From contig JAWQFM010000030.1 of assembly GCA_033442325.1 (NCBI GenBank), positions 240,450 to 304,449 of the forward strand: DNA of 64,000 nucleotides, in the 5' to 3' direction. The position numbers and the translations under genes were made by a program. The stretch is from Salpingoeca rosetta. Taxonomy: Eukaryota > Protista > Choanoflagellata. The notes beneath the pieces are model-generated. The model made no database searches and was not told the DNA's origin. It saw nothing but the letters and a program-made list of their open reading frames with translations. This document shows positions 1,984-14,105 of the stretch, piece by piece (the stretch's first letter is position 1; the number at the start of each line of letters is the position of its first letter).

Positions 1984-4900
1984 ATGGCTGGCACGCGGCC
2001 ACCTGCGTTTGCTGCTCCATCACGCGGAGGTAAGTGCGTGTGTGCGTGCGTGCGCGCGCGTGTGTGTGTGCGTTTGTGTGTATGTGTGTGCGTGTGTGTG
2101 TGTGCTTGTGTGTATGTGTGTGTGTGTGCGTGTGTGTGAATGTGCGTGTGTGCGACTCAGTGTCTGTGTGTGCAGTGCCAAGTATGCATGCAACTCCCAC
2201 TCACGGCACATACTCACACATACACACACACACACACAACACATGTGCAGCGGTGAAATTGGAGCTGACAGACTCCCTGTTTGACAACGAAGACGATGAC
2301 AACTCCAAGACAAAGAACTTCAAGGTGCGTGCGTGTGCGGCACGCTTGTGTGTGTGTGTGTGTGTGTGTGTGTGTGTGTGTGTGTGTGGTGTGTGTGTGT
2401 GTGTGTGTGTGTGTGTGTGTGTGTGTGTGTGTGTGTGTGTGTGTGCGTGACACACTGTGGTTGCGCTTGCCTCGTTCATCTTTGCCTGCTCGGCATTGTC
2501 CTCGATTCACGATGACCGTTGGCGGCGATGCAGGTGGTGGTGCGCGTGCGCCCCATCATCGAGCGTGAAGAAGGGAAGCCAGAGTGCCTCACCATCAAGA
2601 ACGATCAGGTTGGTTGGAAGAGGCGTAGATGGATGGGTCTCGTCAGTGTGCGTTGAATCGAGAACAACTTCGTTCCTCTTCACCTTGTGTGTCTGTGTAT
2701 CTTTGTGTGCGTGTGTGTGTGTATCTTTGTGTGTGTGTGTGTGTGTGTGTGTGTGTATCTACGTCACACAAAGATACACACACACACACACACACACAAA
2801 TACAAAGACACACACACACACAAAGACGCAAACGCGCAAGTACCACTTGTATTGAGTGCTCACGCCCAACTCCCCACTCCAACGTGACAGATGGTGCTGA
2901 TTGACCGCCCCGCGGAGTTTGGACTAAACAAGACGCACCGATTTGTGTTTGATCGCATCTACACGCCGTCGTCAACGCAGGAGGCACTGTACACATCTGC
3001 CATCAAGCCCGTGGTGCTGTCCGTGCTGGAGGGGTACAACGGCTCCATCATCGCATATGGACAGACCGGCACCGGCAAAACGCACACCATCGAAGGACGC
3101 GAGGTGTGACGCGTGTGTGCATGTTTTCTGTGTGTGTAAGGGTGTGTGTGTGTATGTTCTGTGTGTGTGTATGTGTGTGTGCGTGCGTGTGTGTGTGTGT
3201 GTGTGTACAGCGTGCAGTTACACTGTATCTTTCGATGGTATCACTTTATCACCACCTCTTCATTCTCATCAACCGCCACCACCACCACCACCAACCGCCA
3301 CCACCACCAACCACCACCAACCGCCACCACCATCGCCGCCTTCAGGCTGACCAGCGCGGCATTATCCCGCGCGCGGGCGAAGACATCTTCAACTTTATTG
3401 AGAACGAGAGCGACGCAGACTCGAAGTTTCTCGTCCGCACGTCGTTCCTCCAGATTTACAACGAGAAGATTGCAGACTTGCTCAATCCGGAAGGTTTCAA
3501 GAAGCAGGCTGTGGAGAAGAAGCCAAGCCTCAGAATCAGGTGTGGTGCTCAGTGGTGTTGTGTTGTGTTGTGTTGTGTTGTGTGCGTGCGAGTGTCGTGC
3601 CAGTGTGTTTCGTACCTGGTGCTACCTACGTCTGCATTCCACCACCACCACCACCACCACCACCATCCTCACCACCAAGAATACCACGCTGTAGGGACTC
3701 CGGCTCCGACGGCGTGTTCGTGCAGGGCCTGTCCGAACACATCGTGCGCACACCATCGGACATCGTTGATCTACTGAAACTCGGCACCACCATGCGCACA
3801 ACAGGTGAGATGGGGGAGGAGAGGGGTGGGGGTGGAGCAACGCGGTTTTGTTTGTTTGTGTGTGTGTGTGTGTGTGTGAGTGGGTGTGATTGTGATTGTG
3901 TGATTGTGTGTGTGTGGGTGTGTGTCTGGCACAGTTCTCATCCACCACCACCACCACCAACACCACCATTACCACCTTGTCATCATCATCACCAACACCA
4001 CCACCTTGTCATCATCATCACCTCCAGCGGCGACAAAGATGAACCGGGAGTCGAGCCGTTCGCACGCCGTCTTCACCGTCATTGTGGAACGATCAGAGAC
4101 CAACAAGGACTGTAAGCGCTGCAAAGATGCTGCCGTGCTGCTTCTTGTGCTCTATCTTGTGTGTGTTTGCGTGTGTGTGTGTCTGCAAATGTGAGGAGGG
4201 TTTGTTTAAGACACTGATGCACACTCACTCACTCTTACTCACTCCCTAACGCACACATCCACCTCTCACTTCACCACCCCTCACCTCCTCCTGTGAATGG
4301 CAGCTGGGGAGTCGAGTGTAACGATTGGAAAGTTGAATCTCGTTGATCTCGCTGGATCAGAGCGCATCAAGAGCACAGGTGCGCACACCACACCCAGCGG
4401 TCACGGGGGGTGGTGGCGTGGTGGATTGGGGGAGGTTATGTGCGTGTGTTTGTTTGTTTGGTTGTTTGTTTGTTTGGTTGTTTGTTTGTTTGGTTGTTTG
4501 TTTGTTTGGTTGTTTGGTTGTTTGTTTGTTTGTTTGTTTGTTTGTTTGTTTGTTTGTTTGGTTGTTTGTTTGTTTGTTTGTTTGTTTGGTTGGTTGTTTG
4601 TTTGTTTGTTTGTTTGTTTAATGTAAGTGTTCGTTTAACTCCTTCGAAGGTAACGCAAGATTACACACTCACACACTGTCTGACATGCACACTCACTCGC
4701 GCCCCTGCACTGCATGTTTTGCCATGGTTTTGCCTGCAGGCATTGTGGGCGGTGCGCAACTGGACGAAATGAAGAACATCAACACCTCCCTCACCGCTTT
4801 CGGAAAGGTCAGCGTGCTTGCTTTTGTATGTGCACTATTTTTGCTCATATGTCCGTGTGTGTGTGTGTGTGTGTGTGTGTGTGTGTGTGTGTGTGTGTGT

Positions 4901-13900: not shown

Positions 13901-14105
13901 GTGTGTGGGTGTGTGTGTGTGTGTGTGTGTGTGTGTGTGAAGACAACATCTTGCAGTGTTATGACACTTGTGTGGTGCTGCTGTGGTGACGCGCTGCGCT
14001 CACACCACATCATCGCCATGATTCCGTTGACAGCCGGACCGTCCGGCAAGCGGCAGACGACGGCGCTTGCGTGAGTCAAACTGGGAGTCGGTGCATGATG
14101 CGTGA
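1984..14105 (+). CDS. Multi-exon N-terminal kinesin with coiled coil, low-complexity linker, DEP domain and C-terminal ankyrin repeats
   Basis: Motor motifs across exons 2534-5358: [31 protein letters not shown] (P-loop), [56 protein letters not shown]. Coiled-coil exons 5576-6595, DEP exons 9223-~10030, ankyrin exons 11172-13866. The junctions checked are phase-consistent. The stop is uncertain (13890 or 14105). Confidence 0.8.
4448..4619. repeat. (GTTT)n/(GGTT) tetranucleotide microsatellite, intronic
   Basis: Directly visible tandem array. Confidence 0.95.
6695..6770. repeat. 27-bp tandem repeat, about 3 copies, intronic
   Basis: Unit gtacttgtgtttggtgtgcttgtatgt repeated. Confidence 0.85.
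9223..10030 (+). other. DEP domain (exons 9223-9414, 9565-9618, 9784-9822, 10016-)
   Basis: Spliced peptide [82 protein letters not shown] fits the DEP pattern (P..Gi, FtG..W, A..ig..l..g.i, F...Y.F). Confidence 0.75.
11172..13866 (+). other. Ankyrin repeat array (~8 repeats), inversin/ANKRD55-like
   Basis: [70 protein letters not shown] and GMTPLHYAI in seven in-phase exons. Confidence 0.9.

Follow-up and report, generated by a model that had tools for sequence, protein, structure and literature searches.

The locus described here raises the question of whether a kinesin motor, a DEP domain and an array of inversin-like ankyrin repeats are joined in a single protein, or whether neighbouring genes merely give that appearance. 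The locus occupies positions 1984-14105 (+ strand) of a 64,000-nucleotide stretch of the choanoflagellate Salpingoeca rosetta (assembly GCA_033442325.1, contig JAWQFM010000030.1, positions 240,450 to 304,449), the whole of which is referred to as the window. An original prediction, made from the letters of the window, had read it as one fusion gene, and our comparisons lead to the same answer: with a probability of roughly 80%, positions 1984-14105 represent one intron-rich gene, belonging to a small family with a kinesin-DEP-ankyrin layout. A diverged paralog keeps the order of the domains, as do relatives, where contigs from other organisms cover it from the stalk onwards. Our confidence in a single gene stems mainly from the fact that two diverged copies keep this order, and that one of the relatives (L003) sits in another subgroup of the family. 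No characterised kinesin of this architecture emerged from the literature searched, in agreement with the prediction, and automated models of such proteins probably exist in public proteomes.

To describe the gene, a spliced model was built by anchoring each visible coding piece, then choosing splice sites. The model comprises 29 exons and 1,666 amino acids (aa) with zero internal stops; 28 of its 28 introns are GT-AG, with lengths of 150-389 nt. This model retains the predicted start (ATG 1984) and the predicted end (TGA 14103-14105). The DNA is ~55% G+C, and the short introns are crowded with (TG)n and (CA)n runs. Phase-consistent, stop-free GT-AG splicing, to which the original prediction had appealed, is found across the locus, but it does not carry the weight as evidence that it was given. 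In a control at the paralogous locus, stop-free GT-AG chains led by thousands of paths into the true frame and into both wrong frames alike. Splice-phase consistency was dropped as proof of one gene after this three-frame control, and because stop-free chains reach any frame, the domain order must rest on homology rather than on splicing logic.

The closest such homology lies in the same genome. The same contig carries a paralog ~430 kb further downstream (G000:C30, ~665.8-674 kb, +; loci L084 and L090-L092). It was identified as the best genome match to an inversin-like protein, the match falling in an 802-aa open frame (G000:C30:672946-673794). A single exon, this frame encodes a full DEP domain (47 bits) together with the ankyrin array, and it is preceded on the same strand by exons for the motor, a neck (..SDTAMLSAYQSEVKRLRAML), the conserved segment of the stalk and a linker rich in Q. 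The paralog has diverged from the window gene to ~40-60% identity, with the domain order kept. The intron preceding the DEP domain has the same place in both S. rosetta copies and not in the relative L096, and it was left out as evidence.

The original prediction had also proposed a search for the architecture in other holozoans. Contigs from at least five other organisms carry DEP, linker and ankyrins in single reading frames; two extend into the family stalk, and none reaches a motor. An ankyrin exon used as a query retrieved orthologous fragments in other assemblies, one of which, once extended, led to P0165 and P0166, each featuring DEP and ankyrins in one open reading frame (ORF). The DEP-ankyrin ORFs of P0165/L003, P0166/L004 and L005 are all open to the 5' end of their contigs, that of L005, from a metagenome scan, comprising 642 aa with a DEP domain of 58 bits. 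The genomic contig L003 starts at an intron acceptor just before the neck coil (..MSNEIRRLKAEL) and continues through the stalk into a 755-aa frame of linker, DEP and ankyrins. In L096, the stalk, a linker of ~190 aa, DEP and ankyrins are joined via two clean GTCAGT introns. Both contigs thus begin with the family stalk, in the same register as the window gene. The stalk segment is conserved across the family as GGxKI..EF..AV..E..RL..ER..L..EK, and in ungapped alignments it exceeds shuffled sequences with z values of 7.6 for the paralog, 9.4 for L003 and 4.9 for L096; the L003 stalk also gave z 7 and 11. Beyond the stalk, the spliced DEP-to-ankyrin region of the window gene is collinear with L003 (40% over 474 aa) and L004 (37% over 439 aa). 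Because our tree places L003 in a subgroup apart from the window gene, these data suggest that the layout predates the splits within the family.

An alternative with two adjoining genes turns on the kinesin/DEP junction, which the model places at intron 15 (8948-9222, +; ccg/GTGAGT ... caccag/GAC). A kinesin gene would end at the stop at 8954-8956, a DEP-ankyrin gene would begin at an ATG in or near 9223-9414, and it would merely be their adjacency that is conserved. Without the donor at 8948 the frame does meet that stop six bases later, an in-frame ATG lies inside the DEP exon, and splice chains are easily found in any frame. Two genes are nevertheless very improbable, as the same order and strand are kept by a paralog that is only ~40-60% identical, and the stalks of L003 and L096 lie directly upstream of their DEP-ankyrin parts, where a terminator and a promoter would not fit. 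The DEP-ankyrin ORFs of other organisms, moreover, are open to their contig ends through a linker of >150 aa, with no need of a start. The disputed segment is itself built as are the gene's other introns: G+T makes up 0.72 of the first 80 nt of 8948-9222 and C+A 0.68 of the last 80 nt (0.46 and 0.54 in exons), the same build as that of the motor introns checked by homology.

Expression was considered through sampled 31-letter words of positions 6400-11400, of which a fraction of 0.47-0.53 is present in eight presumed RNA runs from two studies. The expected fraction is 0.47 for all modelled exons without introns; with only the kinesin side present it would be 0.39, and with only the DEP-ankyrin side 0.09. 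The observed fractions fit expression of all exons, and are silent on their continuity. A further alternative accordingly concerns transcription: one locus in which an internal promoter also, or mainly, gives a motor-less DEP-ankyrin protein, the fusion being one isoform. In-frame ATGs in the DEP exon and ahead of ankyrin repeat 1 speak for such a product, as does the motor-less state of every contig from another organism that carries the ankyrin part, though these are short fragments. We consider this arrangement unlikely, given that the ORFs of these other organisms are open upstream instead of starting at a conserved Met.

Several observations weigh against the single gene that we favour. 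Phase consistency in such TG-repeat-rich DNA is near chance expectation, and so offers little as splice evidence. The motor domain is present only in the two S. rosetta copies, the contigs from other organisms ending at the stalk. Joining the stalk of L003 to its DEP-ankyrin frame takes a +1 shift at a C8 run (L003:640-720), which could be a contig error, a small intron or a real break. Shorter isoforms from the internal ATGs are possible. Were the two parts to prove separate transcripts, a conserved family of DEP plus inversin-like-ankyrin proteins would remain, itself undescribed. One gene with the kinesin-DEP-ankyrin layout is the reading adopted in what follows, in which all of its exons lie on the + strand.

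The N-terminal part of the spliced product is a kinesin. Exons 1-3 (1984-2029, 2251-2324, 2534-2608) carry the start codon, an acidic N-terminal lead and the motor start (..KNFK/VVVRVRP..), with the junctions gag/GTAAGT, aag/GTGCGT and cag/GTTGGT; a start at ATG 2528 was rejected in favour of ATG 1984 and two short exons. Exons 4-10 (2891-3103, 3346-3539, 3695-3804, 4028-4111, 4304-4378, 4740-4807, 5132-5359) encode the motor and the neck linker. The Pfam kinesin motor (PF00225) was detected on 2891-3106, 3349-3540 and 5132-5359, with E values of 1e-13 to 1e-21 and 49-78 bits (cut-off 29.3). The spliced model contains the P-loop GQTGTGKT, switch I SSRSH and switch II DLAGSE, and thereby combines the features by which the kinesin superfamily is recognised, namely a PF00225 motor, a GxxxxGK(S/T) P-loop, SSRSH and DxxGxE. 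Judged by these motifs, the motor looks catalytically sound, with its ATPase and microtubule-binding motifs intact. The neck coil and the coiled-coil stalk follow in exons 11-13 (5576-5728, 5940-6077, 6467-6595), and the stalk, of ~140 aa, probably dimerises the protein.

Comparisons with motors of known family gave a less uniform picture. Summed over exons, PDB scores reach ~161 for OSM-3 and KIF3C and ~151-154 for kinesin-1, and in single-exon PDB searches kinesin-8 and kinesin-3 rank first on individual exons. The nearest other motor within the genome is that of a canonical kinesin-2-type gene, at 45% over 331 aa. The kinesin-2 type is one candidate affiliation, its exon-wise PDB scores being slightly ahead of those of kinesin-1. 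Kinesin-2 proteins (KIF3, KIF17/OSM-3) share with the window gene an N-terminal motor followed by a neck of the form ..N(Q/E)D.(S/K)D(A/Q)LL..Y..EI..L, which we take this gene's neck to resemble. They differ in their tails, which are unrelated to the DEP-ankyrin tail found here, and the resemblance to the genome's own kinesin-2-type gene stops at the 45% identity given above. That gene (G000:C2, ~1,935,260-1,938,470, -; L097) is intron-poor, with one 1,070-aa open frame and the neck INEDPKDALIRQYQEEIEKLK.

The stalk is followed by a low-complexity linker of ~630 aa, encoded by exons 14-15 (6890-8742, 8902-8947) and rich in His, Gly/Asp and Gln. This region had been taken for one long disordered exon, and here the model departs from the prediction: the open frame 6836-8953 (706 aa) is interrupted by a (TG)n intron at 8743-8901, the length of which is divisible by three and which is free of stops, and which is hence concealed in the frame. 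No Pfam family was detected in the linker. In searches without S. rosetta's own records, the open frame returned low-complexity matches only among protein representatives, and a length-limited search of protein databases with the long exon returned no homolog. The linkers of the relatives are shorter and unrelated in sequence. The linker is disordered and fast-evolving.

The DEP domain is encoded by exons 16-19 (9223-9414, 9565-9618, 9784-9822, 10016-10076), with its end, LYQ/F, formed across the 9822/10016 junction. Since the domain is split over four exons it was scanned piecewise, and the Pfam DEP family (PF00610) was detected on exon 9223-9414 with an E value of 7e-4 and 19.9 bits, under the cut-off of 32.7. 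The spliced region fares better against the relatives: in tblastn searches it matches the DEP domains of L003 (E 2e-19), L005 (1e-18) and L004 (3e-15), and the full DEP profile (positions 1-72) is matched above its cut-off by P0165/L003 (58 bits), L005 (58) and the paralog (47). By homology to these domains, that of the window gene is a DEP domain.

The original prediction had linked this domain to Dishevelled, a link that our data do not bear out. In PDB sequence searches with the P0165 DEP, DEPDC5, DEPTOR and P-Rex1 come first and DVL2 lower (E 0.014); with the DEP of the paralog, DEPDC5 comes first and DVL2 second (E 0.003). The domain is therefore not specifically Dishevelled-like, as DEPDC5, DEPTOR and P-Rex outrank DVL2 among solved structures, and because it shows no special likeness to Dishevelled, the proposed Rosetta-stone link to that protein is only an idea. 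What this kinesin family has in common with the known DEP proteins (Dishevelled, DEPDC5, DEPTOR, P-Rex, Epac and RGS7/9) is a single DEP domain of full-profile length; what sets it apart is that its members have no PDZ, DIX, RGS or GEF partner domains.

Between DEP and ankyrins, exons 20-21 (10429-10535, 10915-10938) encode a Pro/Gln-rich linker and an 8-aa acidic mini-exon, DDDTQPDE (24 nt). In the corrected model, the small exons lying between the two domains are 10016-10076, 10429-10535 and 10915-10938. The donor at 10536 (gat/GTGTGT) is the least certain junction of the gene, in accordance with the prediction, which had marked a donor near 10534 as the weakest. The length of the linker encoded by exons 20-21 agrees with that of the nearest ortholog, L095; the similarity between them is weak, and the exact 10536 junction is not supported there. 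Two exons of the gene open with the acidic motif DDD(D)TQP, one of them before DEP (motif at 9223-9243), the other being the mini-exon itself (10915-10938). The relatives likewise possess acidic runs immediately ahead of DEP.

The ankyrin part spans exons 22-29, of which exons 22-25 occupy 11172-11318, 11682-11750, 12052-12156 and 12349-12471; the rest of the repeats, a short tail and the stop TGA at 14103-14105 are encoded by exons 26-29 (12758-12896, 13253-13478, 13710-13866, 14034-14105). The spliced model has nine repeats where about eight had been counted. The Pfam Ank family was detected on 12046-12177, 12758-12901 and 13252-13479, the region is collinear with orthologous contigs (L002, 63% over 295 aa; L095, 57% over 211 aa), and the intron after TTPLHW is common to this gene and L004. 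A C-terminus at the stop at 13888 was rejected, since the last exon, 14034-14105, brings back an RPxSG tail motif that is found in the relatives.

The likeness of this array to inversin, as originally predicted, is upheld by three kinds of evidence: the best named matches, a register-specific score and a sister clade. When the extended orthologous fragment was searched against 5.8 billion proteins, the best named matches were inversins of fish, spiders and ticks. The better-scoring unnamed matches (P0168-P0184) show the layout of inversin, with an IQ motif after ~16 repeats; the IQ motif is present in P0168 and P0174. Repeat by repeat, the array lines up with inversin repeats 1-9, with an identity of 33-38%. 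In the native register, starting from the first repeat of every inversin or inversin-like protein, the alignments score 151-190 bits; in shifted registers, they score 89-106 bits. Generic ankyrin controls (n=7) score 65-110 bits, with no favoured register. In the ankyrin tree, 13 family members form one clade (98), the inversins another (99), and the two group together with an SH-aLRT of 96, a value that comes from a quick maximum-likelihood search with few, arbitrary and long-branched controls and with ANKRD55 and many ankyrin families outside the sample.

Such a likeness might instead be a generic or convergent similarity between repeats, without shared descent. The modest identity speaks for this, as ankyrin consensus residues dominate alignments of this kind, and so does the sampling of the tree. 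Convergence is doubtful, however, in view of the register: the inversins and the ankyrin-IQ proteins align from their own first repeat 60-90 bits above the next-best register, a preference that the seven generic controls lack. The rank of the inversins among the named matches and their clade with the family argue in the same direction. Shared descent with inversin is thus the interpretation we prefer, and the array can be called inversin-type in the looser sense of being collinear with repeats 1-9 and falling in a clade with the inversins. ANKRD55, which the prediction had named beside inversin, has a length of about 600 aa; none was found among the best 120 matches of the 5.8-billion-protein search, in which this length is within range. 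A protein-cluster search with P0154 returned generic ankyrin clusters only.

Inversin (INVS/NPHP2; Diego in Clytia) is defined as having 14-16 ankyrin repeats with at least one IQ motif after them (PMC4818920). The window gene resembles it in that its nine repeats are in register with inversin repeats 1-9 and its family is sister to the inversins. It differs in its number of repeats, in having no long C-terminal region and in the position of the array, which follows a kinesin and a DEP domain. No IQ motif was found in the 24-aa tail that follows the ninth repeat. The canonical S. rosetta inversin, published as PTSG_12654.1 (PMC4818920), is encoded at G000:C21:822400-822780 (-; L093/L094), where a 65-aa piece of PTSG_12654.1 matches at 98% identity, a match that points to S. 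rosetta or a very near strain as the source of the genome. That the window gene is itself inversin is ruled out by its nine repeats, its lack of an IQ motif and this separate canonical gene.

The tail of a kinesin sets which cargo the motor carries and where. Kinesin-2 is the motor of intraflagellar transport and works in cilia, as does inversin. The product of the window gene would be a plus-end-directed, dimeric motor moving along microtubules. Its DEP domain may attach the tail to a membrane or receptor surface, its ankyrin groove may bind a protein partner, and the motor would then transport this partner along microtubules or hold it there. A folded-back, self-inhibited form of the tail is possible. 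The flagellum or basal body is put forward tentatively as the site of action; it is the leading candidate because cilia are where the closest relatives of the motor (kinesin-2 type) and of the array (inversin) both work.

The tail would appear to be a lineage-specific one, and the combination of DEP with inversin-type ankyrins is undescribed in the literature searched. A more speculative proposal, which we hold to be improbable as it stands, is that the family is choanoflagellates' own and arose from a kinesin-2-like motor, and that the fusion records an old working partnership, at the cell cortex or the base of the flagellum, of DEP with inversin-type ankyrins, which animals later divided, within planar polarity signalling, between Dishevelled and Inversin/Diego. 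Among the unicellular relatives of animals, S. rosetta is the closest that is tractable, and both of its copies are open to tagging and knockout. The gene offers a concrete handle on the roles of inversin-type ankyrins and DEP domains before animal polarity, because S. rosetta has a canonical inversin and reportedly no Dishevelled (PMC4818920).

Beyond these features, all 28 introns of the gene have a G/T-rich start (median ~0.8 over the first 80 nt) and mostly a C/A-rich end, as exemplified by 8948-9222 and 12472-12757, and the (TG)n and (CA)n runs that they often contain could pair. Two minus-strand ORFs inside the locus (13393-14235 and 7775-8464) matched no Pfam family and were taken as chance. 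Just upstream of the gene, a 411-aa open frame (window 19-1251, +) has a Pfam match to PPC (E 5e-10), the bacterial pre-peptidase C-terminal domain, which is unexpected in a choanoflagellate gene.

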